Assembly (NCBI GenBank): GCA_002269645.1
Contig: NIVC01000512.1
Location: forward strand, 265,967-329,966
From: Macrostomum lignano
Taxonomy: Eukaryota
DNA: 64,000 bases
Reading direction: 5' to 3'
In this document: positions 12,242 through 55,919 of the stretch, piece by piece
Position numbering within the stretch: position 1 is the stretch's first letter
Layout: every line of letters begins with the position of its first letter
Notes under the pieces: model-generated
Databases searched by the model: none
Seen by the model: only the letters and a program-made list of their open reading frames with translations
What the model was told of the DNA's origin: nothing
Program-made: the position numbers and the translations under genes

Positions 12242-12452
<211 letters not shown>

Positions 12453-13068
12453 AGCCAGTTCATTTCAGGACAAAACATTCTTCTGCAGCCACCAGGCAGT
12501 CCATAATCCATGTCGAATTCTAGATTGCCCCAAAATACAGCAAAAGCCGATGTCACACGTGGCTGGAAATTTCAATCCGATTCCCCCAAAGCACAATTTT
12601 TTAGCAGCGGCAACCTGCAGTCCTGATCAGTTCTGACATCTGATACAAGCCTCGAGACATCAGCGATTTGTGCAAGAAATAACTGCTTCTCTGTCAATAC
12701 GCCTACCTCCTCATGCTTTTAGTCGGGTGCAGAAATTAATATTTCTCACCCAGCTACCTAAAACCGGCTAAAAATGCTTCTACCCACGCCGGTCTCAACT
12801 ACCCCCTGTTTTCTGTGCCCCCTCCCCAATTTCTGCTCCGTGAACGCATTGCTGCAATCTCTGGGAGGCCACTGGGCCGCAACGCACTGGCCAATCAGGC
12901 GGGCTCACAACAGTTCCCGAGGTTCCCGAAGAAGTTCCACCGTTATCGGTCAGTCTACATTTATTGCTTATTTTGTTCTGCCTCATCTCGCCAACAGCTG
13001 GCAGCTGGCAGCTCCGGCGAGCAGTGTAAAAATTTTACTCCCCATCCTGCAGCAGCAGTTCTTCTGCG

Positions 13069-13455
13069 ATGCGGCTGCTGGTGCAGCTGGTGCTTTTTCT
13101 GCAAGCCTTCGAGGCGCAGCAGCAGTCGCCGACGCCGCTGAAGTCGCTGAAGACGCTGATGGTGCTGGACATGTCGCAGCTGCGCCAGCTGTCCCCAGAG
13201 AGGACCGAGTTCTACGCCAGGTTTCTCACCAAGCGAGTTCGCGATCTGCAGCACGCGGTCGGGGCGGAGTTCCAGCCCGACTCTGTCCTGGTGCCGGACA
13301 GCGAGCTCACTAATCTTGTCAGCGTCATCGATTCGCAGTCTGTGGTGGCGGTGCTGTCGCCAACCATGTCCGCTCAGCTGGTGCTCGCCTGCAATCTACT
13401 TCGCGTTGTCTGCGTTGGCAACCGGCTGGTGGACTTGCCGAACTCGGCCGAGCTG
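13069..13455 (+). CDS. GluN3-like NMDA receptor gene, amino-terminal domain exon (true start may be upstream)
   Basis: Coding-like codon usage. The donor ctg|GTGAGA is phase 0 and joins the next exon in frame. Confidence 0.6.
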
Positions 13456-25102: not shown

Positions 25103-25944
25103 GTGAGAGCAGAGCGTTGCTATGCTATGTGTCAGTCACGACCTTTGCAACTACTAGACATGCGAGATGCGGCAGGTGGTTGCCAGGAGGGTGGGGTTGT
25201 TGTGCGATTCGCAGCCATGAGGGCCAACCCCCAAGGCACAGAGAGTGTACATGCTTGACCATCAGAAAGTCAGGGCTGCTGTACACCCTGTAAGACCGAA
25301 AAATGGAGTCCCTTATTACGAGGAAACGGAAGAAATGAGCCATTCCTGTCTCCGTAGTGATTTTTTTGAGCTAAGCCTGCCTTCAGAGAATTTCTAAGAA
25401 ACAAGATCACCCGTTCTTCCAATTAAAGCGTCAATGCTAAAAATTTGGCATTCGATAGATTGATTTTTCAACTGTCATATTGTTCGTCAGATTGCTGCTC
25501 AGGAGCCCGGCTCTGCTAGCTACTAGCTTAGGCACACACGAACACAGAGAGAGAGAGAATGAGCGAGCAGGGGGATGTTCCAGAGGAGAGGCGGATGATG
25601 GGCAAACACATATTTCCCGAGTCCGCTGGCCTCTCTTCTTCCTGGCGTGCTGTTAAACTGAAAGTTCTTCAGCAGCCTCGACAGCTGGCGGCGGGGGGAA
25701 GGGGCCGACGAAATTCCTGAAGTTTGCCGCCCAGCAGTCGCGGGCCCGAGGCTGGCGGGCATCATGGGAGAGACTTGAGCTGCAGTCGCTGTGTTTGCTG
25801 GGCCTTGCTTTGTTTACCGAGAGCGACAGGTTATGAGGAGTTGGAGCTGGTCAGCTGCCGGGCGGACCGCTGGGTGCTTCTCTGTGTGCTCAACCGGCTG
25901 CTTGAAACTCGACCTTGAATATTTCCGAGTAACTGTGCTTCGGC

Positions 25945-26800
25945 TTGCAGTGAGAATGTGCTGGAGTCACAGTGAGAATGTGCTGGAGAAGGTGAGGGAA
26001 TGTGCTGGAGTCACAGTGAGAATGTGCTGGAGTCACAGTGAGAATGTGCTGGAGAAGGTGAGGTAATGTGCTGGAGTCACAGAGAGAATGTGCTGGAGTC
26101 ACAGTGAGAATGTGCTGGAGTCGGTGAGGGGATGTTCTGGAGTCACAGAGGGAGTGTGCTGGAGTCGGTGAGGGAATGTGCTGGAGTCGGTGAGGGAATG
26201 TGCTGGAGTCGGTGAGGGAATGTGCTGGAGTCACAGAGGGAGTGTGCTGGAGTCGGTGAGGGGATGTACTGGAGTCGGTGAGGGAATGTGCTGGAGTCGG
26301 TGAGGGAATGTGCTGGAGTCGGTGAGGGAATGTGCTGGAGTCGGTGAGGTGATGTGCTGTAGTCGGTGAGGGAATGTGCTGGAGTCACAGAGGGGATGTG
26401 CTGGAGTCGGTGAGGGGATGTGCTGGAGTCGGTGAGGGAATGTGCTGGAGTCGGTGAGGTGATGTGCTGTAGTCGGTGAGGGAATGTGCTGGAGTCACAG
26501 AGGGGATGTGCTGGAGTCGGTGAGGGGATGTGCTGGAGTCGGTGAGGGAATGTGCTGGAGTCGGTGAGGTGATGTGCTGTAGTCGGTGAGGGAATGTGCT
26601 GGAGTCACAGAGGGGATGTGCTGGAGTCGGTGAGGGAATGTGCTGGAGTCGGTGAGGGAATGTGCTGGAGTCGGTGAGGGGATGTGCTGGAGTCGGTGAG
26701 GGAATGTGCTGGAGTCGGTGAGGGGATGTGCTGGAGTCGGTGAGGGGATGTGCTGGAGTCGGTGAGGGAATGTGCTGGAGTCGGTGAGGGGATGTGCTGG
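25945..26800. repeat. 22-bp satellite ending just before the acceptor
   Basis: Unit GGAGTCGGTGAGGGAATGTGCT. Confidence 0.95.
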
Positions 26801-26825
26801 AACCCACCCCCTCAACCACCCGCAG

Positions 26826-26996
26826 AATAAAGTCCGCCTTACGCCCACCAACTTCGCGGGTCCGCTGCTGCTCTTCTGCTTCGGAGTTCTGCTGTCTGGT
26901 GCCACAGCAGCCGCGGAGTTCCTGCTGTACTTTGCCCTGTTCCCCCTGCTGCGCAAGGTCAGGGTGAACCCCGCCTGCTGCCTGCCAATCAGCCAG
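26826..26996 (+). CDS. GluN3-like gene, M4 exon
   Basis: LTPTNFAGPLLLFCFGVLLSG...AEF, hydrophobic M4 helix, phase 0 at both ends. Confidence 0.85.
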
Positions 26997-27184
26997 GTTC
27001 GTGGAGGGTCAGCTCTGGGTCATCCTGATTTAGCACTTCGCATGCACTTTCCCTGGGGGGGGGGTGAGAGATGTTGCCAAATCTGGAGTCAAAATTTACT
27101 TTCTTTATCCATTTTCTTTTGCTTGATGGATTTTCTTAGATGCGTCAGAGATAAACCAATCGAGCGATAGATAGGGCTACGGAG

Positions 27185-27672
27185 AGACAGTGGAAGAGGG
27201 AGGGTGGGGACTAGGGAGAGGAAAAAAGAGAGGGAGATGGAGAGGTAGCTAGGGAGAGGGAAAGGGAGAGGGAGCGAGAAAGGGAGCTAGGGAGAGGGAG
27301 AGGGAGATGGAGAGGTAGCTAGGGAGAGGGAAAGGGAGAGGGAGCGAGAAAGGGAGCTTGGGAGAGGGAGCGGGAGAGGGAGAGGGAGCTAGGGAGAGGG
27401 AGCGGGAGAGGGAGCTTGGGAGAGGGAGAGGGAGAGGGAGAGGGAGCGGGAGAGGGAGCTTGGGAGAGGGAGCTTGGGAGAGGGAGAGGGAGAGGGAGAG
27501 GGAGCGGGAGAGGGAGCTTGGGAGAGAGAGCGGGAGAGGGAGCTTGGGAGAGGGAGCTTGGGAGAGGGAGAGGGAGAGGGAGAGGGAGCGGGAGAGGGAG
27601 CTTGGGAGAGAGAGCGGGAGAGGGAGCGGGAGAGACAGGTAGGGAGAGGGAGCGGGAGAGGGAGAGGGAGAG
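27185..27672. repeat. Polypurine (GGGAGA)n-like tract
   Basis: Nearly pure purine strand with GGG every 6 nt. Confidence 0.9.
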
Positions 27673-28314
27673 GTAAATTGAGTAGCGATGGTCTGGTGAA
27701 GCAGCAAGCTGGCGGACCAGTCCTGGAAAATAATTGCACGATCCGAAGGTGTGATTGAAGATATCTGTGACAGCATGCAATCTAATTGTGTTGTAGCAGC
27801 CCTATGTTTAACTTTCTGGCATTTTGCTACAGGTAATGTAGTAGTGTAACAGAATATTACAATAAAAATGAATACAAAAAGTAAGAGATAGATTATGTGA
27901 AAAAATCAAAGCTCGAATAGCTAATAATTAAAATTTGAATTTGGTAAAGCAAAAAAAACGATGAAAAACGGTCCAAAAACTTCAGCCAATGCTTATAAAA
28001 CTCAACATTTCCCCGGATCCCTGATGCATTTTCATAGCTAATAGCTCAATTCCGATTTCCTATAAATGATCTATTAGCCAACGGATTTTTTTCAGTTAAC
28101 AATTTTCCACCACGTACTTCCTTCTATCTGCCATGTGGATCCTCGAACCTCAGCATTTTTTATGTAGAGAGGATTTTTCTAAATAAGCAGACACCCTTGA
28201 TTTGACTCTTGAAACACGGTGAAACGGTGAAAACACGATTTAGATAGCTTCATGACAAAGACGCGGAATGAAAATGTCTATCTTGCCTACGGCTCTCTGG
28301 AGATTCCCTTGGGG

Positions 28315-28770
28315 AATTCCGCTAGGGGGATTCCGTGGAATTCCAGTAGAGGGTTCTACAAGGGGGATTTCACTAGGGGGTTCCACTATAGGGGGTTACA
28401 CTAGCGGGTTCCACTAAACGGTTCCACTAGGGCCGGGATTCTACAAGGGGGTTCCACTAGGGGATTCTACAAGGGGGTTCCACTAGGGGATTCTACAAGG
28501 GGGTTCCACTAGCGGGCTCCACTAAACGGTTCCACTAGGGGATTCTACAAGGGGGTTCCACTAGGGGATTCTACAAGGGGGTTCCACTAGGGGATTCTAC
28601 AAGGGGGATTCCACAAGGGGGTTCTACAAGGGAGTTCCACTAGGGGATTCTACAAGGGGGTTCCACTAGGGGGTTCTACAAGGGGGGTTCCACTAGGGGA
28701 TTTCACTAGGGAAATTCCAAATGGGGGTTACACTAGAAAATTCTATTAGATGATTCCATTAGGCGGTTCC
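28315..28770. repeat. 26-bp G-run minisatellite
   Basis: Unit CTAGGGGATTCTACAAGGGGGTTCCA. Confidence 0.9.
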
Positions 28771-28901
28771 ATTAGGGAACTCTGCCAGGGTGATTTCTGG
28801 GTAGCTCCCTTCTTGGCACAAGTGTATATGAGTTAGTTCTCGAGCTAGTTTTCCCCGAATGGCCAGGGCCCTAGCAACTCTTTCCCCCAAACGCCTTGCA
28901 G

Positions 28902-28984
28902 AGGGTCTACCGCCACCTGGTCCGCTACCGGGAGGCGCAGGAGAGGCGGCGGTGCAATCGCGACGCGCTGCCTGTGGCGCTCAG
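28902..28984 (+). CDS. GluN3-like gene, cytoplasmic-tail exon
   Basis: ISQ|RVYRHL resembles GluN3A TSQRLHRA. Sites ttgcag| and ag|GTGAGT. Confidence 0.75.
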
Positions 28985-29289
28985 GTGAGTGGCAGCAGTT
29001 GTTGTGACAGCAATGTGTTTTCTTTCGAATTATAGCCTGTCAAGTTGACGGGCAGCGCCAGCTAGGCGAGTGCAACTTGGCCATTGATGGGCCTCTTCAG
29101 AGTCAGAGAATTTCTACTCTCATGTTCAGGAGCTGCTGCTTTCCAAACACTACACTGCAAAGCATATCGATACCTCCGCAGCCACTCTACACTTCGTCTC
29201 TTATGCCTCTGTTATGCCCTGCACTGTAACCTCTTGGATGTCTCATTTATCACTGTCTCCACTTCTCATACTTGACCACTTCTCTTAAC

Positions 29290-29690
29290 GTCAACTCTCT
29301 CCCCATCTCACATCTCCTCTCCCTCCCTCTACACATCTTCTCCCTTCTGCACATCTCCTCTCCCTTCTTCTACACATCTCTTCTCCCTTGTTCTGTACAT
29401 CTCCTCTCCCTTCTTCTGCACATCTCTTCTCCCTTCTACACACCTCATCTCCCTTCTTCTACACACCTCATCTCCCTTCTTCTACACACCTCCTCTCCCT
29501 TCTTCTACACACCTCATCTCCCTTCTTCCAAACATCTACTTTCCCCTTCCCTCCCTACCTCTACACATTTCTCCCTTCTACAAATCTCTCCCTCCTTCTA
29601 CACATTGCTCCCCCCGTTTCTCATCTACTATTTCTCACCCATCTCCTATGCCTCCGTTTCTCATCTCCCCTCCCTTCCCTCTTCCCATTT
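29290..29690. repeat. CT-rich degenerate repeat
   Basis: CTCCTCTCCCTTCTTCTACACA-like units. Confidence 0.85.
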
Positions 29691-30186
29691 ACGTATATAG
29701 ATACTAATTTGTCAGCGAAACATCACTAATGTGAAATAAAAAACGGTTCAAAAAACCCAGGCTAGAATTTTGTAACAGAAAAACACAAATAAAAGTGGAA
29801 TTGACTTTTCAGCCAAGCTGCTGAGGAAGTAAATCCCACATTTAGCAAGCTCCCAGTAGCGATTCGTGAATTGGATTGCCCGGTTTCCTAATGGTCTCTG
29901 ATGAGGCTGCGACTGCGAAGCTGGGAAAGTACTGGACAGGGGAGAAGGGAAGTTCGAGGGGAAAATTGAAATCTGTAAGTTTCGAGCAGATCAGCGCTGC
30001 GGTTAGAAATTTTCTTTCGGACAAGTCAAAGCCAAAGCGGCTGCTTTGGCCGGATAATTCGAGATGATAATTGCAATTTAAGACACGTGCCGAGACTTGG
30101 GTGCAAATTTGTGGCCCACATTTTGGTGCAATTCTATCACTAAACTGTGGGACTTCTGTGTGACACTCATGCAGCTGAGGTTCGAT

Positions 30187-30838
30187 GCCATTCTCTGATT
30201 AAGCTGTGAGACTTCAGTGCCATTCTCTGATTAAGCTGTGAGACTTCAGTGCCATTCTCTGATTAAGCTGTGAGATTTCATTGCCATTCTCTGATTAAGC
30301 TGTGAGATTTCATTGGGTAAGAGACTAATTCGACACTCTAAGTCACGGTAAGAGACTAATTCGACACTCTAAGTCACGGTAAGAGACTAATTCGACACTC
30401 TAAGTAACGGTAAGAGACTAATTCGACACTCTAAAGTAACGGTAAGAGACTAATTCGACACTCTAAAGTAACGGTAAGAGACTAATTCGACACTCTAAGT
30501 ACGGTAAGAGACTAATTCGACACTCTAAAGTAACGGTAAGAGACTAATTCGACACTCTAAATAACGGTAAGAGACTAATTCGACACTCTAAAGTAACGGT
30601 AAGAGACTAATTCGACACTCTGAACTACGGAAAGAGACTAATTCGACACTCTGAACTACGTAAGAGACTAATTCGACACTCTGAACTACGTAAAGAGACT
30701 AATTCGACACTCTAAAGTAACGGTAAGAGACTAATTCGACACTCTGAACTACGGAAAGAGACTAATTCGACACTCTGAACTACCGTAAAGAGACTAATTC
30801 GACACTCTGAACTACCGGAAGAGACTAATTCAACTCTA
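30187..30838. repeat. ~32-bp satellite that switches to its complement at 30316
   Basis: GCCATTCTCTGATTAAGCTGTGAGACTTCAGT up to 30315, then GGTAAGAGACTAATTCGACACTCT..., which is the exact complement read in the same direction. Confidence 0.95.
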
Positions 30839-31017
30839 AAGAAGAACCTAACCGAAGACCCCGACAACCTATGAGCATATTAACCTTGGTTTTTTAATTT
30901 GAATCGACGGAATTTCTTCAAAGTTATGAACTCGGTACGAAAGCTTATTCGGTATGGTAGCGATGTCACACTTAGCGTATTAAAGTGTTAAAGGTAGTTG
31001 TATTTAGCGAGCGCGTC

Positions 31018-31466
31018 CGACGTTTTCATGTGGTCGCTGTCCCTGTCAGACGAGTACAGCGACCCTCGGCTAGTGAGCTCCTCTGGGCTGACGTGCTGGT
31101 AGTCGTAGTAGTCGTTGTCGTCGTCCTGCGTCGGCGTTACTACGATAACTTGTTATAGCGACACGTCTGTCTGGACCTCACGTCGTAGTCGAGTGTCGAC
31201 CTCTCGCATCTGGTCCGGTAGTCCCGGTTCTCGACGGTCAAGTTGGCCCTGTACGCGGTGTACGCGCTCGCTTAGCGCTTAGACGATTCTCTAGCCCTTT
31301 AAGATCACGCTGCGAACGTTGCAAGCTCCCGTTTAGGTTCCGCCTGTAGCTCAGGCTCGACGACCTCTGTCGGCGAAGTTGCCCGCCGCGGTCGCCGTCG
31401 CCGGCCCCGTATCTCGACTGCGTGTCCTTAGACGACCTGAGCGATCGGTTTGGCGAACTGAAAATT
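31018..31466 (+). CDS. Probable last exon of the GluN3-like gene, readable only on the complemented sequence, with probable indels
   Basis: The complement gives cgcgcag|g ctg caa aag tac (RLQKYTSDRDSLL, in phase 2), a long frame ...HQQQQQDAAAMMLLNNIAVQTDLE...RERIANLLRDRE, and a third frame ending KPLDF*. Confidence 0.6.
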
Positions 31467-31974
31467 ATTAATTAAATAGCGTCATTAATTAAAAGAGAAC
31501 TGGTACAAACGCTTGAGCTAGTATTTTAGTATGAATATCTCATACGGTGAAGAACGAGCGAATCTCCGATCCCCCGCTAAGAGGGTTACTTTTACCATGG
31601 ATCCGGTTTTTCGCGGTCAGTATTAAGTCTCAGCAACGTCTCCATTGTGTCAATTTAATCCTTTCTTCACTGAGATCTGTTGACTTTGCTACTCTACAGA
31701 GCCATTCGATTTTCAGCAGTCTCAGTGTATTCTAGTTAATTTCGAAAAATAACAGACGCTGAGACCCCGCGAAGATCTGAGACCCCGGCATCTGAATGAA
31801 CATAGACTCCACACGACATGAGAAAAATGCTAGGACGTTGAGTGCACTACGTGAACAGTAGAGTGGCAGCTTAACGTCAGTAAATTTAGTAATTTCTCAG
31901 CTAGGTCACTGCAATCTCAGTGATTCATAGTACAACCGTTACTGCATCGCTAAGAACGGTGCCATTGTAAAAGT

Positions 31975-33512
31975 TACCCAGATGACCCAATCCCCGCTAA
32001 GAGATGTGACCCAGTCCCCGCTAAGAGATGTGAACCAATCCCTGCTAAGATGTGACCCAATCCCCGCTAAGAGATGTGACCCAATCCCGCTAAGAGATGT
32101 GACCCAATCCCCGCTAAGAGATGTGACCCAATCCCCGCTAAGAGATGTGAACCAATCCCCGCTAAGAGATGTGACCCAATCCCCGCTAAGAGATGTGACC
32201 CAATCCCCGCTAAGAGATGTGACCCAATCCCCTAAGAGATGTGACCCAGTCCCCGCTAAGAGATGTGACCCAATCCCCGCTAAGATGTGACCCAATCCCC
32301 GCTAAGAGATGTGACCCAATCCCCGCTAAGAGATGTGAACCAATCCCCGCTAAGAGATGTGAACCAATCCCCGCTAAGAGATGTGACCCAATCCCCGCTA
32401 AGAGATGTGACCCAGTCCCCGCTAAGAGATGTGACCCATTCCCCGCTAAGAGATGTGACCCAATCCCCGCTAAGAGATGTGACCCAATCCCCGCTAAGAG
32501 ATGTGACCCAATCCCCGCTAAGAGATGTGACCCAATCCCCGCTAAGAGATGTGAACCAATCCCCGCTAAGAGATGTGACCCAGTCCCCGCTAAGAGATGT
32601 GACCCATTCCCCGCTAAGAGATGTGACCCATTCCCCGCTCTAAGAGATGTGACCCATTCCCCGCTAAGAGATGTGACCCAATCCCCGCTAAGAGATGTGA
32701 CCCAGTCCCCGCTAAGAGATGTGACCCAATCCCCGCTAAGAGATGTGAACCAATCCCCGCTAAGAGATGTGACCCAATCCCCGCTAAGAGATGTGACCCA
32801 GTCCCCGCTAAGAGATGTGACCCAATCCCCGCTAAGAGATGTGACCCAATCCCCGCTAAGAGATGTGACCCAATCCCCGCTAAGAGATGTGAACCAATCC
32901 CCGCTAAGAGATGTGACCCAATCCCCGCTAAGAGATGTGACCCAGTCCCCGCTAAGAGATGTGACCCAATCCCCGCTAAGATGTGACCCAATCCCCGCTA
33001 AGAGATGTGACCATCCCCGCTAAGAGATGTGAACCAATCCCCGCTAAGAGATGTGACCCAATCCCCGCTAAGAGATGTGACCCAATCCCCGCTAAGAGAT
33101 GTGACCCATTCCCCGCTAAGAGATGTGACCCAATCCCCGCTAAGAGATGTGACCCAGTCCCCGCTAAGAGATGTGACCCATTCCCCGCTAAGAGATGTGA
33201 CCCATTCCCCGCTAAGAGATGTGACCCAATCCCCGCTAAGAGATGTGACCCAGTCCCCGCTAAGAGATGTGACCCAATCCCCGCTAAGAGATGTGACCAT
33301 CCCCGCTAAGAGATGTGACCCAGTCCCCGCTAAGAGATGTGACCCATCCCCGCTAAGAGATGTGACCCAATCCCGCTAAGAGATGTGACCCAATCCCCGC
33401 TAAGAGATGTGACCCAGTCCCCGCTAAGAGATGTGACCCATTCCCCGCTAAGAGATGTGACCCAATCCCCGCAAAGAGATGTGACCCAATCCCCGCTAAG
33501 ATGTGACCCAAT
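31975..33512. repeat. 24-bp satellite inside the complemented block
   Basis: Unit CCCCGCTAAGAGATGTGACCCAAT as written (corrected: GGGGCGATTCTCTACACTGGGTTA). Confidence 0.95.
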
Positions 33513-35019
33513 CTAATATGTCCGTTCATGTTCGTAACACTCGTCGCGCCGGGGTTCGGACTTACGTCAATATTAAAGCTGGCGTTTGTTTTTATTTAGA
33601 GCTACGTTTTTACTTCAGTCTTTCTTTTCGAAAAAGCAACTTGAAGGTAGGACTGTCAAGCAGTTGATTCCTTCGAGAGAAAGTTCACGTCTGTCTTCAA
33701 AACTATAATATAATAAATATAATGATATCGATCTTTCTCATGTGTTCGTCGTTAGTTCTTTCGTTGTCAATATTCTGAGACGATATGTCCTTTTTGTCGT
33801 TTTGTCCACTAGACTATTTTTATAAATATTATAACCAAACCTTCTTTACAGGAACGACATTGAATGAGGTACAAACGCCTAATTATAAAAATGTGTTCTT
33901 TTACACGTCGTTGAGACTGCGTTCCTATTTTAGTGTCTTTCCGACAGAATATCTTGTTGCCTCTTAGAAGAGTCTTACGTTACACCTCTGTCCTCGCTCT
34001 CGCTTATAGACTCGGGTCAATGGCCCTGCTACTCTTGGTTACTCGTATCTCGAGTGAACTCCTTACTTGCTATCAATCTACTATTTTCGTTACGTTATTT
34101 TACTCTGTTCTAGACTACTTTGTACAAAACTTAAAATGATGAAACATATTGTTTAAACTTTTCGTGGCCACACACATTTAATTTTGTTTGTGCCCGTCCT
34201 CCATACTGTAGACGACTTCCATTGACCCCGATACCGCCGATTAGTGAATAATAATATAGTATATATGACCCCGACGCCACTTATTTGTTTGTGTCATTTT
34301 TATAATTTTGAGAAGTTTGAGATGACGTCGCGCTTTGGGTCTTCATCATAGATGTCAAACACTGTTACTTTTACACAGTTAAATTTTGTTTTATTGTCTA
34401 TTGAGACTCGTTCGTGGCTAGGTCGACTGGTCTGGGTGTCTTTGCGTCTGTGTTCTTCTGTGTGTTCTTCCTTTTCGTAAGCGAGGTTTTCCACTAAATT
34501 TATTTATAAGAATGCTTCTCACCTTCTTATTTATAGTTAGATACATTATTTTATTTGAACGGAAATATATATCGCACTTTCTCGCGTCCTCCGCTAATCT
34601 AATGTGCTTCGTCTATACGCGCGTTTTTTACTTATAAACAAAACGAAATAGTGAAGATGATTATCATCGTGGTTTAAATATTTTAATATTTCAGTGAACA
34701 AACTATAAGTATACGGTTTATCAAAGTTCCTATCAAAACGCCTAGAATTTTGTGACGCTCCATGACACGAATAATGTGTGAACGTGTACGTTAGAGAGAC
34801 CGGTAACTAAAGACGAATTGCAGCTATGAAACAATACAGTACGTGAAATCCCTTTAAAGGCTTTTCAGAATACCGATGTAAGATGTGGTAGACACCAAAC
34901 ATAATTGGTAACGAAAATTATTTGTGTTGGGTTCTCACACTGTCAGCGATTTCACACTTTTTGTTGCTTTGTTTGTTTTTAGTTTCGACGACCTCGTGTG
35001 CTTGTCTCCCGGTTAACCG

Positions 35020-35850
35020 AGTGACGTAAGGTCACGACCTGACTCGCCCGTCGTACCAGACCCGGCCGAATTTAGAACATGTCCGGAAGAAGGTCGCCGT
35101 GACGCACGTGGTGTAAGAGGCCAATAGTTGCGGTATTTAAGCCGCCGTAAACGGCGCGCCGCTGTCGCCGCAATCGCTCCGACTCCTCCGCAGCGGCGGT
35201 CTCTTGCTCCTGCTGTTACTGCTGCCGCCCCAGTGCCGGTCGTCGACAACGCCCAGAAGGCCCGGCGGCGGACGTGGCGGCGGAGACGGAGGCGGCGGTC
35301 AGCTTTGCCGGCCTCCTCCTTTGCTTTTGCTCCTGCTTCGGCTGTCCGCTTTGCCGCTCTGCCGCTTCGGCGGTTTTTTACGCGGTGAGGGCCGCGGCTG
35401 CAACTGCGACTCGCCGTTCCGATTTGACCGCGTCGTCTGACCTCCGCCGCGCCTCCCGCCCCGTGACGTCGACATGTACACGTCTCGGACGACGACGACG
35501 ACGCCTGCGTTAGCGCCGCCTAGTTCGCGAACCAAACGGGGTTAACCACAGCTCTTAGGTTGTCGCGCTGAGACTACGACGCCTACGACGACCGACCGGA
35601 GCTACAGTTAAAGCTTAAGCAGGAGCAGTCGTAGCAGGCGAACCGACAAGAGGCGTCGAAGTCGGCGTCGCCGCCGAAGCCGTTGTCGCGCACCGTCCGT
35701 TAGCCGGTCCGCCGCGTGTCAAACTTAGGCCCGCGGTCTGCTGTCGCACTCCGACTGTTCGTGTCTCAGGTCGAGCCCTAGCGTCGCGAGATGCTACGGC
35801 TCCCGCAGGAGCGGAAACATTTGATAGTGATGAAGCAGCGGTCCGACGTA
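35020..35850 (-). CDS. 276-aa C-clamp zinc-finger protein, read right-to-left WITHOUT complementing (minus strand of the corrected sequence)
   Basis: Uninterrupted ATG-to-TGA ORF of 831 nt: MQPGDEVVIVYKGEDALGIVERCDPELDSVLV...[35 protein letters not shown]...MQ*. Matches the ZNF395/ZNF704/SLC2A4RG C-clamp KCRKVYGME.RD.WCTACRWKKAC.RF. Confidence 0.9.
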
Positions 35851-36130
35851 CGATCTAACTTATTTAAGAATGATAGTTACGTGGAACCGAATCCGTACTT
35901 TACGATATCGACTTAGCCGGTCTAACCCGACTTTTTCCAACCTATTACTTGTATTGAGGATATTTTTCTTGAATGATAGGTAAAAATGTTTGATGAATTC
36001 GGATTCTGTTACTTATCGATTTACTGTAGAAACCGTTCGTCACCTAACCGATACCTCTTGGGTACGTGACCAGACGAACTACATTGTTTACATTGTTGTT
36101 TAACTGTTGGTACTACTGTACGTGTACTTC

Positions 36131-38336
36131 ATGTTCCCGACGAATTATTTATTCAAACACCTTTTTCTGTGAAGACTTATACGAAGGTGAATTTTTTAAT
36201 GAACGTAAATAGGGGTGAATTACTCTGAAAAGTTGTATCAAAGATCTATCTAACTACGTAAAGAGGTAGGATATCTTGGTACGATGTTTTGTCAGGGAAT
36301 TAAGGTGGATTCACTGTCGAAGGTCGAAACGAAAGTTCCGGAGAGGTTCGAGGAACGCACTCAGTTTCGTGAAAGGGAACTCTAACAAGAACTAGAAACC
36401 TTTCTTCTTCAGTCGACCTCGTTCCAACCCGTTTATCCGACCCATACCGTCGTCTGAGTCAACTCAACTATGGTCTTTGAGGATACAGTGGGACCGAACC
36501 ATTCGATCTTGTAACAATACCATGTCCTTTTACCGTACCATAGATGATAAACCGGTGAGAACTAACTCCTTGACGTCGTGGATCCCGTTCGTTTGTGAAG
36601 TCATGTTTACTGGTCAGTGACACCGTGAAAGAAACTCATCTTATCCGTCGTCCTATAGTATGATGGTCTTCTTCTGATGACAATACTGGAACGGTTATGA
36701 AGAGAGTGTATCCTTAAACTATCTCCTTAGGAGAAGTTTTCGTTAGGTGACGGATGAGATCCTAAAACATAGATCCAGTATTTTCATTTGGATTCAAAGT
36801 AGGGGATAATCCTATAACAGATGGTTAAAACTTCGAGGACGTAGTTAAATAACTCGTACTTCAAACGTTTGAGTTGTGTTCGAACGTAGATCCAACCCAA
36901 GTTCACTATCCCGTAGATCGTACATCTGTGAAAGGAGTACGGATCTACTAGTACGTCCTATCTTTACCACGAACTTAGACTTTAGGGTTGTACAAAGAAC
37001 TAAAGTACTTGATAGTAAATAATTAGAAGTAACTAGAAACCTGTGTTCGGTGACAATATAAACATTATCGGTTTAAATCTATCAGAAACACAAATAATAG
37101 TAGATCGAGGTCCGTCGATCTTGTTTTAAACGGTTTGGTGAACATGTGGTAACAGACCCTGACCCCACTCCGAAATAGTAGATTACGAAAAACTTCATAG
37201 ACGTTCGTGAGTTTCCGTCTAACCGGTTCAGTTTTAACTTGTTCCTAACGTTGAACAGACAGTGTAACTTGTAACAGTTAACGTTCCGTTCCAGATCTCA
37301 GTATAGTGAAAAAACTGGTAACGTAAAATCGTAAAATCAATCTCCGACTTTTAACTGTATTTTCTACAGTTAAAGATATATTTTTCTTTACGGTTTATTT
37401 TATAATAAAATAAACATGTTTTCTTTCAATCTAAAAGGTGTTTGACTAATCCGTCACGAATAAATCGACCGTGACCGGTTTATTCAAACGATGATAAATC
37501 GACCGTCAGGACGGGGTGACGGTCATTTTATTCGAACAGTGATAAATAAATCGGTCGTTAGGACGGGGTGACGACCAGTTTATTCGAGCAGTGATAAATC
37601 GGTCGTTAGGACCGGGGATTACCGGTGCGGTAATATATATAAATAAATTCTATAAATTTGAAACCCGTTATGTTTCATCCATATCACTTATATTTAGTTA
37701 CATCTAAGTCATGTTAAATAATAAACGGAAATTCAAACAAATTAACAAAGACCTTCAGAACGTATAAGGCTTTTAATAAACATCGTCGTCTTTTGTATAT
37801 TTGTTTAATTTTTAATTAATACGTATAAAATGAAAGTGAAATTAGAGATTTAGTTTTGGTGAGTAATTTCGGTTTTTGGTGATGTTTGTGGAAATAGTTT
37901 TTTGAGGTTTTAACATTATATTTATTAATCGAACATCATACAATTTAATAATTAAATTCCAGTACTGTTCGTCACGCATATATATTTATATATATTTACA
38001 TAAAACTGATCGTACGGTAACCCCTTAAGGAGATCATTATCACTCACTTGTCCCTTCTTGGATTGTGGTTTAGGGAACCGCGTCCAGTTGTCCTTTACAC
38101 CACAATCGGTTCTAACGGCCGATTTATCACTGCTCGAATAAACTGGCCGTCACCCTGTCCTGACGGTCGATTTATCACTGTACGAATAAACTGGCCGTCA
38201 CCCCGTTCTGACGGTCGATTTATCACTGTCCTAATAAACTGACCGTCACCCCGTCCTGACGGCCGATTTATCACTGCGCGAATAAACTGACCACGACCGA
38301 TTTATTCGTGACGGTTAAATAATTCGTTGGGAACAT
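36131..38336 (-). mobile_element. Degenerate mariner relic inside the complemented block, with a MITE in its right TIR
   Basis: Corrected ends TA-CAAGGGCTGCTTAATAAAT... and ...ATTTATTAAGCAACCCTTG-TA. Decayed transposase with an HTH (QSAFECLQILQKAL...VYKWF) and PYPAYLPNLAPADFFFPKIKNNLKGKCF. About 1.34 kb without the MITE. Confidence 0.8.
37451..38314. mobile_element. MITE/foldback element (~860 bp) with subterminal tandem repeats and AT-rich core
   Basis: CCGTCACGAATAAATC at 37451 and its reverse complement GATTTATTCGTGACGG ending at 38314. The repeat arrays at both ends are inverted. Confidence 0.75.
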
Positions 38337-40817
38337 TAATACACTTTATCAAAAAATTTAAACCTTGGGTTAAAATTTTTCATTTTATTTATGAGACAAG
38401 CTTTTTCTTTAACGGTACTTTATTACCCCATCCGGATTGAATTCTCGACCTATTTTTATTTTCATCCGGGATTCTTGATCTTCATTATGATAATGATCCG
38501 GATTTGTTGACTAGACATTTACAGTGTATACAAACAAAACACACCGAACGTGTAACATTTGAAACAGGTTTAAGATAATCCGGATCCGGATCATGAAGAA
38601 CAGTCGACACTGTTTATAGGATCAAAGAAAACCAGCTAAAAGCAATAATTTTTTAAATCTGGAAGACTCCGAATAGTTCTGTTATGCTTCCAAAATAACC
38701 ATAATGATAGATTTCCTTTATTTCCTAATCTGTTTTTCAGTAATCTGCTTTGTTGTGTGGGATAGATTTCCTGGCCTAGCATATCTGAATCTAATTTGCC
38801 AACTGCTCGAAGCCGTATATTTGATTAATAGGCCTATCTATGACGAGAAATAACTTATTTTAGCATGTCATAGCTTAGTTTTCGCAGAATCGCAGTAGCT
38901 AAGGGATTGTCTTTAAGGCGGGCAAAGAACAATACCAGAGCACGCACGCACGCAGAGAAGCGTGCGTTAAGCAAAGAACAGCTAGCATTTGATAATTTAG
39001 TACTGACTGTTGTACTGTAAGCCTACTGTCATCTGTTGTACGCTCGCTTTACAACAAAATGATTTCAAAATTTCATTATTGAGATACACGTAAAACAAGT
39101 TTTAATATAACTTTAAGTATTAATTTGGTTCAATTAGATACGTTAGATTATTAAATAAGGTAAAAATTTGAATGCCAATTTTATCTAAAATATATATAAA
39201 GTAGCTGTGTCCCACTCGTGAGGCCATTCTATCCTCGGAAAACACGGCCTTACAGACCAGTAATGAATGCAGCGCTGCATGTAGCTTTATTTTGTTGTAT
39301 TGAAAACATTTGCGCACGCATGCACCAGCCTTGTATAGAGAATACAAATGACTCCAAACTCCCATTTTAGGCCTAGTTTTGTGGATAATTGGAAGTAAAG
39401 ATTGTAAAGAATCAATAAAGATTGATTTAAGGATTTTACTAAAGTTCAACAAGGTCGATAAAGTGCTACTAGGCCTATATTGAATTTTTTGTTTTGAAAA
39501 AAATTGATAGGCCTATATTGAATTTTTTTGTTTTGAAAAAAATTGATAGGCCTATATTAATTGAATTTTGAAATATTATAAACTGTTAAATTTAATTTTA
39601 TACATTATATGTATAATTGTTTAATTATTATTAAACTAAATAATTTAAAATCATAAAATGTAGGCCCCTATAATACATACAACTTAAGACAAAAAAGTCT
39701 CTTCATCTTTGTATAAATTGGTAGGCCTAGAACTTTTAAATTAGGCCTATGCTTTGTCTAGGCCTGTATCAATGAAATATGATAGGCCAAAGATTTTTTT
39801 ATTGTTATTTAGGAGAGAAGGGAAGGCAATCTTTTGGAATACTATCGACAACAAGTAATGTGATAATCTGCTAATCAAATTTAACAACTGCACTTGATAA
39901 ACCAATGTTTATTGTACTTTATAAGCCAATGATTATTGCACTTGATAAGCCAAGGATTATTGCACTTGATAAGACAATTATTATTGCATTTGATGTGTAA
40001 AGGATTATTTTACTAGATGAGTAAAAAGATTATTGAATTTGATGGTGCATCAATTATTGCACTAGATGATCAGGGGATGCCTGATATTGGGAAAGCGAAA
40101 GGCTGGCTCTTAGGAGGGGGTACATGCCATCATGCTTGGGCACAACCTTGGGATTCATTTGGCCGTTTCAATTGGCAACATACACATGTAAGTTGCTATT
40201 GGACAGAATAGTAATCACGTGACTGCTCTCAGCCAATAGCGACTTACATGTATGTGTTGCCAATAGAAACGGCCAGGTGATTCCTAAAGTTTTGCATGTA
40301 TGCATGCCATCTTGGAGTATACTATCTGGGGGATGCTTGCCATTGTATTTTGGGGATTTTGCTATTGTATTTGGGGGGGGGTACTTACTTTTGTATTTGG
40401 GTATATGTTTGCTATCTTGGAGGAAGGGGGTAAGGATACTTTTCTGCTTTTTTAATAAATACCAACATCAAAAAGTCTATGAAAGCTTAGTATATGCCTG
40501 TGTATACTAGTATATGCCAGAATGTAGCTTTGAGATAAATTTTGTATGCTAGTATACACTAGCCAATGCTTTGTATGCTTGATTAATCTTGAATTTTCTG
40601 CATTATCGACCTTATTGCATAGGTAAGCCTTGTAAAGGATTATTCTCCTTTAGGTTAGTAAAAGCAAAATCAAGTTTATAGAAATATAAATTTCAATACT
40701 GCATAGACACAAGCTATTGGCTTCTTTACAAACTAGCAATCATTATCTAGAACATTTTATTTAAACTTCAATTGAGTAGAGCAAGATTAATAGCATTTTG
40801 CTGGCTCATGCTTCCAG

Positions 40818-43800
40818 ATGCGCAGTGAATCTTGGTTAATGCTGCTTTGTGCTCTGTTCTGTTCGGCATTTGTGCCAGCCCAGTTCACGCAAGAGTGCCG
40901 TTCCGATACCTACCCACCCCCAAGCAGCTCAGAGGTGGAGTGGTTTGATGTCAGCTTAGACGAAGCTCCAATTATTCGCTGGCGCCATGTGGTAGCGCGC
41001 CGTCAATCCCAGATACGCGACCTACTGTTGCAGTTTAAAAATTTCATTCGGCAACTGACCGGCTCGAGTGTGTACTTTAACCTTGTTGCGCGGTCTCTGA
41101 CTCTTATTGCGCCCACTGTGCCGCAGCCCTACCAGGACGAAATGGTTGGCATTAGCACAGTGACTGGCATTCCATTGGGCGAGATTTTGCTTTACAATAT
41201 CTTCTACGAAGCCACTAACCTGTGCACGTCTGTGTTGGCTGAGGATTCCAAGGTAGATATAATATTTACTATCTTCTTAGTGAGACTTTCTGCTCAAGTC
41301 TGACAACACAACAAAAACAACAAAATACGCTGTCAGGATGGCAAAAGTCAGCGTCGCAGGGCGCGCTTCATGGCTTGGGCGCGAACAAAGGCCGCGCCAC
41401 CGGCAGTGTCCGGGGCGCCGGCGTCAGCCAGCAGACAGTCGACGTAACGCCGAGTTCGCGCTTGACCTCGCCGGTAGGGTGCCTGCAGTGTGAACAGCAG
41501 CACCTGCACCGGCTGTGGGCAGTACGACTCGGCGCAGATGAGATGGCCTGCGAGCTGGAGTCGCCGACGGCGCAGTAGATCGCTTGGACGTGGCAGGCCA
41601 GCGCGGCGATAGAGTGCCGCGTTGGTGACTCGCTCGACGCCGATGTTGAAGGCGGCGCGCAGCAGGCCAGCGTGCGCCGCATCGACTTGCTGAGACTTCT
41701 CAATTCTAAGACCCATTGAAAACGATACTCTACGGCCCCAGAGTCACTATAGAAGCGTCCGAGAGTAGTTTCAGAGTCGCAGACAATAAAGCATCTCAAA
41801 TTGGCTCTTAGGCCATCCTTTTTGGTAACTTGCGCCGTGCCGTGACATCTCGTCGTTTTGGACTCGTCTAGAGTCACTTCTTTCGTATTTACCTGTGTTA
41901 TCTGCAACAACTCTGGGGTGACGCAATTGACGGAAATGGCCCGAATGCCCGATTTTTTTAAGGGTGGCCCGAATTTATGTGTAGCTAATGGGCCTGATTT
42001 TTCCTCACTAATTCTTATTCTCTATTGACGAAGTCGTGAGAAGGACAGCCTTGCAGCCTTGGATTGCTGACCATCAGGGCACTTGTTGTATCACAATCGT
42101 GTCTGGTGGCTAAAGGTTGGGCTGCTGCCAGTCTGTAGGTCTCACCAGACTCAAAGAATTTGTGCGCCAGTGCCTATGCTGTATGCCGCTGGCAGCTGGA
42201 GGAGGAAAGATGATAATAACGTAAGAAAAGGGAGAAGCTGGAGAAGAGTCACGTCAGATATCCAAAATGAAAGTAGAGCCAGCAAGAAATACACCGACTT
42301 GGAGAAGTTGGTTCAGTAGACGCCCGAGCAGATTAGGGAGAAGCTGAAGCAGAGCAACTGTTGTTGGAGACGACAAAGGCCAAGGAAGCAAAAAAGTGCG
42401 GCCCGAAAAAACGGCTACCCCTCCCTCCCACAACTGATCGGGAGCTTTTTTGTGCGTATTTTTATTATTAATTCTCATTCTTATACCATGTACTCGTTAT
42501 TGATCATCGTTTCCATCTTGTCAGGGAGTCCTTTACCACGCTCGCAATCTGGATTTCGGTCTCTTCTTTGGCTGGGACAAAGCCAAAAAGACTTGGCTCG
42601 TCACCGAGTACCTTCGGCCAACCATTGTGAACATCCGGTTCAAGAAGTCCGGCCAGACGGTGTTCATGTCCACCCACTTTGCCGGCTATGTTGGCATTCT
42701 GACCGCCCTGAAGCCGGGCAGGTTCAGCCTCACCGTGAATTCTAGAAATAGTCTCGATGGCAGCTCGACTCTCGGCATCATCGAATGGATTCTGGGCAAG
42801 AGGGACGCCGTCTGGATGGGCTTCCTAACTCGCAGAGTCATGGAGACGGCCGACAGCTACGCCCAGGCCAAGCAGATGCTGACGGGCACCAAGATGCTGG
42901 CACCGGCCTACTTCATCTTGGGTGGCAACAGCACTATGCAGGTTCGTGAGTTACTAAAATTAGAATAATCGAAAGAGTATCCGATTTTATTAGTGACTGT
43001 ATTGTCAGATAAGGCTAGCTAGGCTTCCAAGGGGCTCTATGCACTGCTAGGTTGACTCAGCTGCAGAGGGGGGGGTCCGAGCATCCGGATACAACAGGGA
43101 AAGCCCCGGATACACCCCGGCAAGCACAGGCAGCTGGTGTTGCCGTGTCCGCAGCGCGGTCCCCCTCCGGGGAGTCCAGGAGGTGGATGGTCACTCGCCC
43201 GGTAGCTTTTAAGTAGCGGACGAGCTGGCAGAGATTCTCGGGCCTGAAAACGTCGAAGAGGTCCGAGTTTGTGCCGAGGTAGATGAGCCTGTCCTGGGTA
43301 AAGACGGGGCATTTGCAGGTGAAGTGCTCCGCATTCTCAACACCTAAGAGGCAGAATGGACATTCCTCACTGCTGATTTTTCCGTGGAGGTGACGATGAC
43401 TTGCAAAACAGCCATGACCCGGGAGGGCCATGGTCACCGCCCTAGTGTCGCTGCGGCTTTACATAGGTTAGATAGAACTTTATAATTGCTCACACAACCC
43501 TGCGGATTAGATCGAGTCTAAGAATTCTGTAGTCTAAACTTTATATATTTATAAATATTTGATATTCAAAAGTTAAAAGTCTCGAAATTACACTGTCCGA
43601 CAAGCCAAATCTACTACAAATCAAATGATTCTAATCTCCTCCCGGCTGCACTGGCGCAGGGCTGCATCATCACCCGGTCCCGAAACGCCGCCATCGACGT
43701 GTGGGAGCGCTCGGCGGCCGCCAACCACACCTGGTACCTGCTGCAGACCAACTACGATCACTGGAAGCCACCGTTTGTGCTTGACGACAGGCGAACCCCC

Positions 43801-43980
43801 GGCAACAAGTGCATGATGGCCAAGGGTCAGGCTAGCATGGGGTTCAAGGAGATCTTCAATGTGCTGAGCTCGATTCCTGTGCTCAACAAGCTCACAACTT
43901 ACACGGCTCTGATGCGGGTGGACACGGGAGAGTATCACAGCTACCGCCAGACCTGCAAGGACCCGTGTCCGATTTGGTAG
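40818..43980 (+). CDS. ASAH1: Acid ceramidase paralog 1; exons 40818-41252, 42525-42941, 43660-43980
   Basis: Signal peptide, YEATNL-CTS autocleavage Cys, [42 protein letters not shown]-terminal CKDPCPIW. All joins are phase 0. Confidence 0.92.
41300..41716 (-). mobile_element. 3' fragment of an RTE-like non-LTR retrotransposon in ASAH1 intron 1
   Basis: LRAAFNI...TNAALY...RRRRLQLAGH post-RT motif, followed by a TTG-rich tail. Confidence 0.7.
43020..43445 (-). mobile_element. 3' fragment of a CCHC-bearing LINE in ASAH1 intron 2
   Basis: GHGCFASH...CPFC...ENAEHFTCKCP zinc knuckle typical of I/R1/Jockey-group ORF2 ends. Confidence 0.65.
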
Positions 43981-44267
43981 ATTGGCATTAAACTGACTCA
44001 ATTTGTGCTTGTTTTATAAAGCAGATTTTAACTGCTTTGGTGCGTGGCTTTCAATTTTGTTTTTTAAATTCCATTTTCACTAACTTCCTGCATTCAGAGT
44101 TTTTTAATGCACTTTTACAATATTTTCTATCTTCCGCAATAGTCAGTTGTCTTTGATCGCTTTTAAAAAATATAATATTTTGTAAGCTCGATTGAAGCTT
44201 TGCTTGTCACTATAATAAACTATTTTGTTGATCCTGATTTTTTAATACTTGCTAGCTGATTCAAAGA

Positions 44268-44830
44268 CTTAGGGAGCGGAGAGGCAGATTCAAGGACTTA
44301 GGGAGCGGAGAGGCAGATTCAAGGACTGAGAGAGCGGAGAGGCAGATTCAAAGACTGAGGGAGCGGAGAGGCAGATTCAAGGACTGAGGGAGCGGAGGGG
44401 CAGATTCAAGGACACTGAGGGAGCGGAGAGGCAGATTCAAGGACACTGAGGGAGCGGAGAGGCAAATTCAAGGACTGAGGGAGCGGAGAGGCAGATTCAA
44501 GGACTGAGAGAGCGGAGAGACAGGTTCAAGGACTGAGGGAGCGGAGAGGCAGATTCAAGGACACCGAGGAAGCGGAGAGGCAGATTCAAGGACACCGAGG
44601 GAGCGGAGAGGCAGATTCAAGGACTGAGGGAGCGGAGAGGCAGATTCAAGGACACTGAGGGAGCGGAGAGGCAGATTCAAGGACACTGAGGGAGCGGAGA
44701 GGCAGATTCAAGGACACTGAGGGAGCGGAGAGGTAGATTCAAGGACACTGAGGGAGCGGAGAGGCAGATTCAAGGACACTGAGGGAGCGGAGAGGCAAAT
44801 TCAAGGACTGAGGGAGCGGAGAGGCAGCGG
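44268..44830. repeat. 29-31-bp minisatellite
   Basis: Unit GAGGGAGCGGAGAGGCAGATTCAAGGAC(AC)T. Confidence 0.92.
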
Positions 44831-44967
44831 AGGGAACTGGGGAAGTAGCCAGACAAGGAGGAATTTAGACAAACTAACAACTAGTGGATGCTTGTGCTAA
44901 ATTATTAAATCTATTATTTCCCGATTGCAGCTCATTGATTTGTCCACTGATTGCATTGCCAACAAGC

Positions 44968-46398
44968 ATGAAGCTGACGCCCGAGCTTATACAGAACTCG
45001 GTGCAGACCACTAATCCGCTGGGTGACCGCGAACTAGATCTGCGAGGATACAAGGTGGCTTTGTTAGAGAATCTCAGCGCTACTCTGGACCAGTTTGATA
45101 CCATCGACCTCACAGATAATGAGGTATATATAATGCTTCCATTGCAACACTATCATTGATGTACTCTCAGCTTGATGCATCACTCTCTGTTCGTTGTTTG
45201 GCCTAGCTGATATGCATGTACTCTCCAATCTCACTTTCTCTTCCTCTTAACAAACTGCCGGAACGGAGAGACAGATTCTTCCTCTAACAAACTGCCATTC
45301 TTCCTCAAACAAACTGCTATTCTTTCCCTAACAAACTGCCATTCTTCCTCAAACAAACTGCTATTCTTTCCCTAACAAACTGCCATTCTTCCTCAAACAA
45401 ACTGCTATTCTTTCCCTAACAAACTGTCATTCTTTCCCTAACAATCTGCCATTCTTCCTCAAACAAACTGCCATTCTTCCTTCAACAAACTGCCATTCTT
45501 CCTCTAACAAACTACCATTCTTTCCCTAACAAACTGTCATTCTTTCCCTAACAATCTGCCATTCTTCCTCTAACAAACTACCATTCTTCACCTAACAAAC
45601 TACCATTCTTCACCTAACAAACTACCATTCTTCACCTAACAAACTACCATTCTTCACCTAACAAACTACCATTCTTCACCTAACAAACTACCATTCTTCA
45701 CCTAACAAACTACCATTCTTCACCTAACAAACTGCCATTCTTACTGCCCTAACAAACGCATTCTTCCCACGAATCGGCAGATCCGCAAGCTGGACGGCTT
45801 CCCCCACCTGCCCCGGCTGGCAAACCTGATGCTGAACAATAACAAGGTGATGCGCATTGGCGACGGCCTTTCAAGCAGCCTGCCGCGCCTGTCGACCCTC
45901 CTGCTGACCAACAACTGCCTGCAGGAGCTGGCGGACTTGGAGCCCCTGACCGCCCTGAAGCGGCTGCGCTTCCTGTCCCTGCTGAAGAACCCCGTCTGCA
46001 GCCGGCGCAACTACCGCCTACACGTGGTGCACAAGCTGCCCAGTCTGCGCTTCCTCGACTTTCGACGCATCACCGACGCCGAACGTCGACAAGCGGCCGC
46101 GCTGTTTACCTCCGGTGGCGTCGGGGATGTCGCCGATAAATCGGCGGCGAGCTTGAAGTCCAAGCCTGCCAAGACTTTCACGCCCGGAGCGCCAGTGCCG
46201 GCGGCTGCTGCCGCTGCGTCGGCGCCTGTCTCGGCAGCCGGCGGCCCGACTTCCGCTGACCTGCTGGCTGTGCGCGAGGCGATCCGGCGGGCAAACACCC
46301 TGGACGAGGTGGACCGGCTCAACCGGCTGCTCACTACAGGAAACTATGCCGGCTTTGCTAAGACTGGCGGCGGAGGCGGCGGAGAGAAGCAGGCCTGA
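44968..46398 (+). CDS. SNRPA1: U2 snRNP protein A'; exons 44968-45123 and 45781-46398
   Basis: MKLTPELIQNS..TNPLGDRELDLRGYK...DQFDTIDLTDNE|IRKLDGFP, leucine-rich repeats, YRLHVVHKLPSLRFLDF, C-terminal AIRRANTLDEVDRLNRLL. Confidence 0.95.
45240..45765. repeat. ~22-bp intronic satellite in SNRPA1
   Basis: Unit TACCATTCTTCACCTAACAAAC. Confidence 0.9.
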
Positions 46399-48090: not shown

Positions 48091-49016
48091 ATGGCATCCG
48101 GTGTATCAGTTGATCCTCAGGTTGAAGAGCACTTCAAAGCCATCAAGATCGGGCACAGGTATCGCTACATTGTGTTTCACATAGTCAACGATTCCACCAT
48201 CACCACGGAGCGCATTGTTGAGGAGAGCAGCTACGAAGATTTCGTTGATTCCTTGCCTAGAAACGATTGTCGCTACATTATTTACGATTACGCCTACACG
48301 CTGGAGGATGGCGGCAAGCGGGAGAAGCTGCTGTTTATTCACTGGGCACCGGATGTGTGCAAAATTCGCTGCAAAATGATCTACGCCTCATCCAAGGTTT
48401 GTAGTGCTAAGCTCTTAAGCTTCTTGATTTATACTTTAAAACACTTATGGTTAGCAAATATCAGTTTTGTTCTTAATAAATTGTTCCGGTCGGTTGCTAT
48501 GGTGATTGGTCGTGGTTGCTATGGAGATTAGTGATGGTTGCTATGGTGGTTCGTCATGGTTGCTATGGTGATTGGTCATGATTGCTATGGTAATTGGTCG
48601 TTGCTGTTATCGTGATTGGTAATGGTTGCTATGGTGATCGGTCATGGTTGCTATGGTAATTGGTCATGGTTGCTATGGTAATTGGTCATGGTTGCTATGC
48701 TGATTGGTCATGGTTGCTATCGCAATTGGTCCTTGTATCTATGGTCATTAGGCCCGGTAGCAAGTATATTAGGAAATATTACGCTATTTAGATTGAAGCA
48801 AAGTATCGTAGAACAATCCAAGTGGTAAGTCAATGTGGGTTGCTATGGTAAATTTTTTCAAACGAAGCTTAACAATCGCATGATTATAATTTTCAGGACG
48901 CCATCAAGCACAAGCTGCGCGGCGTGGTGGAGATTCAGGCCAACGATATCAGTGAAGTGGCCGAGGACTGCATCCGCGATCGGCTGAAGGCCGCCGGAGC
49001 CTCCGGCGACAAGTGA
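48091..49016 (+). CDS. CFL/ADF: Cofilin/actin-depolymerizing factor; exons 48091-48396 and 48897-49016
   Basis: MASGVSV, RYRYIVFHI, LPRNDCRYIIYD, LLFIHWAPD...KMIYASSK|DAIKHKLRG..EIQAND; 141 aa. Confidence 0.95.
48495..48745. repeat. 22-bp intronic repeat in cofilin
   Basis: Unit TGGTCATGGTTGCTATGGTAAT. Confidence 0.9.
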
Positions 49017-55400: not shown

Positions 55401-55919
55401 GGATTCTCACATTGGATGGCTTTTTATCACTTTGCTTGTCCTTTATTGTCTATGGCCCATAGACTAAGGCTGCACGCAGCCAGGCCCTTCGCAGTCAGCG
55501 TAGGCAGGATTCTCACTTTGGATGGCTTTATTCTCAGTTAGGCTGACAAAACCAATACTGTCCTCTGCATGAGCTGCCCCATCACACTCCATAAAAAGGG
55601 CTGCATCATCACCCGGTCCCGAGACGACGCCATCGACGTGTGGGAGCGCTCGGCGGCCGCCAACCACACCTGGTACCTGCTGCAGACCAACTACGATCAC
55701 TGGAAGCCGCCGTTTGTGCTTGACGACAGGCGAACCCCCGGCAACAAGTGCATGATGGCCAAGGGTCAGGCTAGCATGGGGTTCAAGGAGATCTTCAATG
55801 TGCTGAGCTCGATTCCTGTGCTCAACAAGCTCACAACTTACACGGCTCTGATGCGGGTGGACACGGGAGAGTATCACAGCTACCGCCAGACCTGCAAGGA
55901 CCCGTGCGCGCCCTGGTAG
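52476..55919 (+). CDS. ASAH1: Acid ceramidase paralog 2; exons 52476-52922, 53464-53877, 55599-55919
   Basis: Signal peptide, [56 protein letters not shown]. Closest to the canonical sequence. Confidence 0.95.
55083..55528. mobile_element. Foldback/MITE-like element with ~118-bp inverted arms and an internal third copy, in ASAH1 paralog 2 intron 2
   Basis: 55083-55200 is almost the exact reverse complement of 55412-55528. A diverged copy lies at 55325-55420. Confidence 0.75.

Follow-up and report, generated by a model that had tools for sequence, protein, structure and literature searches.

Inversions and strand switches in satellite arrays, some of them centromeric, change a sequence abruptly from one base to the next and can leave a multi-kilobase block in an orientation that differs from that of its surroundings. 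Joins of the SSPACE type and overlap merges are assembly artefacts that are likewise able to place a junction inside a repeat. Half-applied reverse-complement errors, finally, leave an exact plain complement of equal length with character-exact edges, which reads normally once it has been complemented; such errors usually hit whole records, primers or contigs.

The locus described here lies on contig NIVC01000512.1 (407,097 bp) of the Macrostomum lignano assembly Mlig_3_7 (GCA_002269645.1), within a stretch of 64,000 nucleotides (positions 265,967 to 329,966 of the forward strand) that we call the window and whose numbering is used unless a record is named. A block of 8,457 bp in this window matches other copies of the same locus only as their plain complement. 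As in an inversion or a strand switch, the change takes place from one base to the next and concerns several kilobases that differ in orientation; but inversions give the reverse complement, whereas here only the plain complement matches and the block is colinear with its paralogues. It differs from SSPACE-type joins and overlap merges in that there is no N, no base is lost or duplicated, there is no repeat at the right edge and the orientation is one that overlap detection could not have yielded. With half-applied reverse-complement errors the block shares the exact plain complement, the equal length, the character-exact edges and the normal reading after complementation, but it is an internal substring of a 407-kb scaffold, without a gap or a case mark. 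We consider it very probable that the block is an error of the sequence record, in which a substring of NIVC01000512.1 was plain-complemented in place, and that it corresponds to no biological structure.

Results and discussion

A satellite array continues as its own complement

Tandem Repeats Finder (TRF) reports a 32-bp tandem array at 30186–30312 (unit TGCCATTCTCTGATTAAGCTGTGAGACTTCAG, 97% matches) and a 31-bp tandem array at 30316–30841 (unit GGTAAGAGACTAATTCGACACTCTAAAGTAAC), and the downstream unit is the letter-by-letter complement of the upstream unit. The left part of the satellite, which is correctly stored, occupies 30186–30315 (TRF period 32, 4 copies), with degenerate copies extending back to ∼ 30127; it matches NIVC01005020.1 as given, inside a 4,855-column alignment of 99.4% identity. 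The remainder, stored as the plain complement, occupies 30316–30841 (TRF period 31, ∼ 17 copies).

The k-mers of the upstream and downstream arrays were compared in direct, reverse, complement and reverse-complement modes with k = 8 to 20. Of the 45–57 upstream k-mers, 40 were found again downstream as complements, whereas in the direct, reverse and reverse-complement modes none were. BLAST behaved in the same way: the complemented downstream array matched the upstream array with 97.7% identity over 128 bp (E = 3e-54) and 95.7% over 140 bp (E = 4e-58), and the downstream array as given did not match it. An inverted repeat or a strand switch within the satellite is thus not what was found, since the two arrays share no reverse-complement k-mers (k = 8 to 20) and no BLAST match.

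When 30186–30315 is joined to the complement of 30316–30841, a single array of ∼ 656 bp results whose phase is unbroken, so that the restored 30186–30841 is one head-to-tail array of 31–32-bp units in ∼ 21 copies. The complemented part continues the upstream array in phase and also matches the public paralogous contigs, in which the homologous satellite arrays run uninterrupted across the equivalent point. The flip to the complement at 30315/30316 is far beyond chance, and biologically the satellite is one ordinary continuous array.

These results bear out most of the initial annotation of this DNA. It had described the satellite as turning into its own complement with phase and base count preserved, and here k-mers, BLAST and the paralogue alignment agree; its base-exact left boundary at 30315/30316 is reproduced by NIVC01005020.1, whose aligned coordinates abut at 4830/4831; and the true array, proposed to be one continuous repeat of ∼ 650 bp, is indeed in phase when restored and continuous in the paralogue. 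The annotation had also named a direct or reverse-complement match between the two arrays as evidence against itself, and the four-mode self-comparison found no such match.

A block of 8,457 bp begins at the junction

Alignments to paralogues, together with the direction statistics given below, show that the satellite junction is merely the left edge of a complement-only block of 8,457 bp at 30316–38772 (∼ 296282–304738 in record NIVC01000512.1). As references we used the three further copies of the locus that Mlig_3_7 contains, on NIVC01005020.1, NIVC01003816.1 and NIVC01000511.1. With all three, the window aligns as given as far as 30315, as the complement alone from 30316 to 38772, and as given once more from 38773; the as-given block aligns to none of them. 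In NIVC01005020.1, positions 1–4830 match 25467–30315 as given (99.4% identity), positions 4831–13319 match 30316–38772 as the plain complement only (99.3% identity), and the sequence from 13320 matches that from 38773 onward as given (97.7% identity). NIVC01003816.1 is 98.6% identical to the complemented block, and both switch points fall exactly as with NIVC01005020.1. NIVC01000511.1 aligns to the complemented block in four pieces, with the right switch exact and the left within one repeat unit. The block is colinear with its paralogues, its left-to-right order being unreversed, and, measured against the three copies, neither edge shows an extra or a missing base. Un-complementing 30316–38772 restores a single alignment of 20,478 columns to NIVC01005020.1.

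At the left edge, all 45 of the 45 bases compared leftward match NIVC01005020.1 as given; rightward, the first 26 bases match in complement mode, after which a 1-base difference in unit length shifts the ungapped register. The right breakpoint, 38772/38773 (…TTTCCT/GGCCTAG…), lies in unique sequence, where TRF finds no tandem repeat and the coordinates of NIVC01005020.1 abut at 13319/13320. Here 45/45 bases match leftward in complement mode only and 45/45 rightward as given only. By BLAST, no repeat copies within the window cover this edge, and external references were therefore needed to place it. An earlier bound had come from two 48-bp tandem arrays that are inverted relative to each other (37451–37616 and 38153–38314; TRF, with an inverted BLAST match of 82.5% over 166 bp): because they are mutually reverse-complementary they must share one state, which already implied, ahead of the alignment to references, that the right edge lies past 38314. 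The two arrays, which are ∼ 540 bp apart and both inside the block, are arranged like subterminal repeats in a small foldback or MITE-like element. The 64-kb window contains no Ns, and BLAST within it found no direct or inverted repeats that pair or flank the two edges.

NIVC01005020.1 (28 kb) duplicates the window from 25467 to ∼ 53900, and the block lies inside this redundant stretch. The two sequences differ almost exclusively by 1-bp homopolymer indels, with 0–1 private substitutions. To judge from this pattern, the assembly appears to contain one paralogue in two versions, and the redundancy over the block hints at some local assembly difficulty.

An inversion of 8.5 kb, either real or made by the assembler, that was later flipped by reversal only would leave exactly the string that we observe, because the reverse of a reverse complement is the complement; on the string itself this history and a plain complementation of the substring coincide. 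It has the attraction of explaining the choice of these particular coordinates, and the redundant contig NIVC01005020.1, which is of the same haplotype and covers the block, hints at reads that do not all fit the main contig. However, two events with identical breakpoints are required, the edges lack flanking inverted repeats that could cause an inversion or give the appearance of one, and the published methods describe no inversion-correction step (PMC5730564). We regard this history as improbable and prefer a single complementation of the substring.

The statistics of reading direction are reversed inside the block

Plain complementation exchanges CA/TG with AC/GT, TA with AT and CG with GC. 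Dinucleotide biases measured in 2-kb bins are of the usual sign across the window and are inverted only at ∼ 30–38 kb; inside the block CA+TG is lower than AC+GT, TA is higher than AT and CG is higher than GC. A strand-symmetric 4-mer model, with the flanks as training set, was also used to score every position, as given versus complemented, in 1-kb bins. The log-likelihood ratio was negative in all eight of the 1-kb bins inside the block (8/8) and in none of the 145 bins of normal sequence in all the material examined (0/145). The cumulative score reaches its maximum at 30314 and its minimum near 38630.

The complemented block restores an intact gene

As given, the block has open frames that are repeat-derived only. 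Its complement contains a 282-aa open frame on the minus strand (35023–35868) that is absent from the as-given reading, and in the restored sequence a match to PAA46165.1 defines a hidden copy of Mlig021442 at 35020–35850 on the minus strand, with a single-exon CDS of 276 aa plus stop. The restored protein is 100% identical over the full 276 aa to PAA46165.1 (BOX15_Mlig021442g2, Macrostomum lignano; E = 2e-178). Because complementation restores a frame with this identity, the complement is the true sequence of the block. PAA46165.1 carries a ZNF704_C/DUF4772 domain (PF27556, from database-precomputed matches), and among its named relatives zinc finger protein 395 is the closest; our own Pfam search of the complement-derived frames of the block gave no match at E ≤ 0.01. 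Judged by its predicted product, the hidden gene is an intact fourth copy of Mlig021442, ZNF395-like. The annotated copies are g1–g3 only, on three contigs, none of them NIVC01000512.1, and the annotation of that record has no gene calls in the part that corresponds to the block. The ZNF395-like gene was left unannotated because the block now reads 3′→5′ and is unrecognizable to gene finders.

A 24-bp satellite of ∼ 1.5 kb (31983–33513, ∼ 64 copies), stored in complement form, matches the arrays of NIVC01005020.1 and NIVC01000511.1 only once it is complemented. This satellite yields long spurious open frames on both strands, in the as-given as well as in the complemented reading. In the complemented reading only, 30982–31410 on the plus strand contains an open frame of 143 aa whose C-terminal part is coiled-coil-like; it has no Pfam match, and the paralogues have no annotated gene at the corresponding position.

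The block was probably unreadable by the time of annotation

Positions 296787–319946 of NIVC01000512.1 are identical to 30821–53980 of the window as given, at 23,160 of 23,160 bases. This comparison starts 505 bp to the right of the left edge and takes in 7,952 bp of the block and the right edge. A further part of the record, 308430–329966, is identical to 42464–64000. The block is thus present in the record at ∼ 296282–304738, as seen in the database copy compared, which covered 30821–38772 of the block.

The window and the compared stretches of NIVC01000512.1 were drawn from one source, and the breakpoints and the length of 8,457 bp look as arbitrary as those of a synthetic perturbation would. 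One could accordingly suppose that the block is absent from GenBank and arose only in the copy of the assembly used here, planted as a control, for instance, or caused by faulty storage. The depositors' annotation speaks against this. They called the ZNF395-like gene on the three other contigs and not on NIVC01000512.1, where the ceramidase, LRR_9 and cofilin genes next to it do have calls, as they do on all copies; yet the restored protein equals that of g2. A missing gene call is expected if the block was unreadable already in 2017, and not after a recent local change; a local origin is thus improbable. Since the gene is missing on NIVC01000512.1 alone while its neighbours are called, the block was very probably unreadable by the time of annotation (2017), and this evidence is independent of the stored DNA.

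The genes annotated to the right of the block, all on the plus strand, are an acid ceramidase of 389 aa (40821–43980), an LRR_9/ANP32-like protein of 268 aa (44935–46398), a cofilin/ADF of 141 aa (48091–49016), a second acid ceramidase of 397 aa (52464–55919) and an Endostatin-domain gene that begins at 63211 and runs off the window. The ceramidase–LRR_9–cofilin group is found again on NIVC01000511.1, in two places, and on NIVC01005020.1.

Cause and timing of the error

The plain-complemented substring would be the product of half a reverse-complement operation: either a correctly oriented substring was complemented, or a substring that needed to be reverse-complemented was merely reversed. 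We envisage a late, character-level error of string handling that acted on a substring of an already contiguous, finished sequence. It would be because the operation acted on the characters of such a sequence that both edges are exact to the base, that nothing was gained or lost and that the array was cut in phase.

The timing was approached through differences polarised by the four-way alignment, with tandem arrays masked. Short indels private to the window occur at 0.79 per kb in the left flank, 0.85 per kb in the block and 0.58 per kb in the right flank (only 2, 5 and 3 events, respectively), and the block has no private substitutions. It is thus of the same finished quality as its flanks, which argues that the flip came after polishing, as a block already complemented could not have received short reads and would be expected to look clearly poorer. 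From these small indel counts (2, 5 and 3) we infer that the flip was later than consensus and polishing but earlier than annotation.

One culprit that we have considered, but do not assert, would be a Perl scaffolder whose complement routine was case-sensitive or alphabet-limited and was applied to a substring in lower case. The stored FASTA is wholly upper case and carries no case mark around the block. The Mlig_3_7 pipeline used Canu 1.4, Pilon 1.20 and SSPACE 3.0; the mitochondrial scaffolds were then replaced and the assembly was formatted for submission (PMC5730564). None of the published steps should complement a substring (PMC5730564), and this counts against our explanation. A literature search that took in the Mlig_3_7 paper (PMC5730564) and the 2023 MBE re-analysis turned up no mention of blocks complemented without reversal, either here or in other assemblies; the re-analysis states only that the assembly 'contains a number of errors'.

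The initial annotation was right to see in this feature an artefact of sequence production, given the complement-only homology with exact edges. The cause that it proposed, two contigs joined inside the tandem array by an overlap-based merge, did not hold up. The left edge does sit in a tandem array, where spurious overlaps are common, and SSPACE, which was part of the pipeline, can merge overlapping contig ends. Overlap detection, however, relies on direct or reverse-complement matches; a complement-only contig shares neither with its neighbours and could not have been placed in this way. In addition, the right edge at 38772/38773 lies in unique, non-repetitive sequence, the two edges have no repeat in common, the window without Ns offers no scaffold gap, and the block is exactly colinear with the three paralogues with not one base gained or lost. 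A merge is therefore very unlikely, and the phase-perfect satellite junction is better seen as a consequence of a character operation on a substring than as the sign of a join.

That the genome itself holds the satellite and the 8.5-kb segment as the same-polarity complement of its paralogues can be dismissed: beyond the sequence as stored nothing supports it, templated DNA synthesis, repair and recombination all yield antiparallel (reverse-complement) copies and offer no route to a same-polarity complement, for which we know of no process, and it is only once complemented that the block becomes 98.6–99.3% identical to its two closest paralogues and contains an intact conserved gene, its dinucleotide biases being reversed as given.

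Extent of the problem and consequences

About 190 kb of the assembly were examined (the window, the three paralogous loci and three further stretches), and one clear complement block was seen. A negative direction score at ∼ 330464–331212 of NIVC01000512.1, past the right end of the window, falls on a 20-bp satellite of 37 copies. We do not count it as a second block: a satellite built from a single unit, with no comparison copy in any mode, probably produces this score as a composition effect. We raise, as a doubtful but not negligible possibility, that a late step of Mlig_3_7 or a widely used tool may have complemented substrings of many scaffolds, or that software mangled a real inversion polymorphism of 8.5 kb. 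If the error were systematic, it would hide genes and distort the copy-number and paralogue analyses that rely on Mlig_3_7. Further blocks, in Mlig_3_7 or in other assemblies, could be detected cheaply, by aligning an assembly to its own plain complement or by a k-mer score for the direction of reading.

For the present locus, 8.5 kb of the reference of a regeneration model are uninterpretable to an aligner, a read mapper or a gene finder, and the annotation therefore lacks one intact copy of Mlig021442 (ZNF395-like). Over the block, the locus would be counted one copy short in copy-number and paralogue analyses that rest on self-alignment of this assembly.

Other features of the window

Transposon genes occupy the left part of the window (842–7606). 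They comprise a reverse-transcriptase ORF (RVT_1) on the plus strand at 842–2053 and a run of long ORFs on the minus strand at 4373–7606, of which the ORF at 5110–6450 (minus strand) has type-B DNA polymerase and Endonuclease VII domains that suggest a Polinton/Maverick-like element. Three further tandem arrays fit the high satellite content reported for this genome: a strongly G-over-C-skewed array in the ∼ 26–27 kb region (25948–26801), a CT-rich array with a 23-bp unit (29295–29612) and an array with a 29-bp unit whose copy number varies between the paralogous contigs (44255–44849). The normal right flank contains, a short way upstream of the ceramidase gene, an imperfect palindrome of ∼ 156 bp (40140–40295), which is ∼ 80% identical to its own reverse complement.
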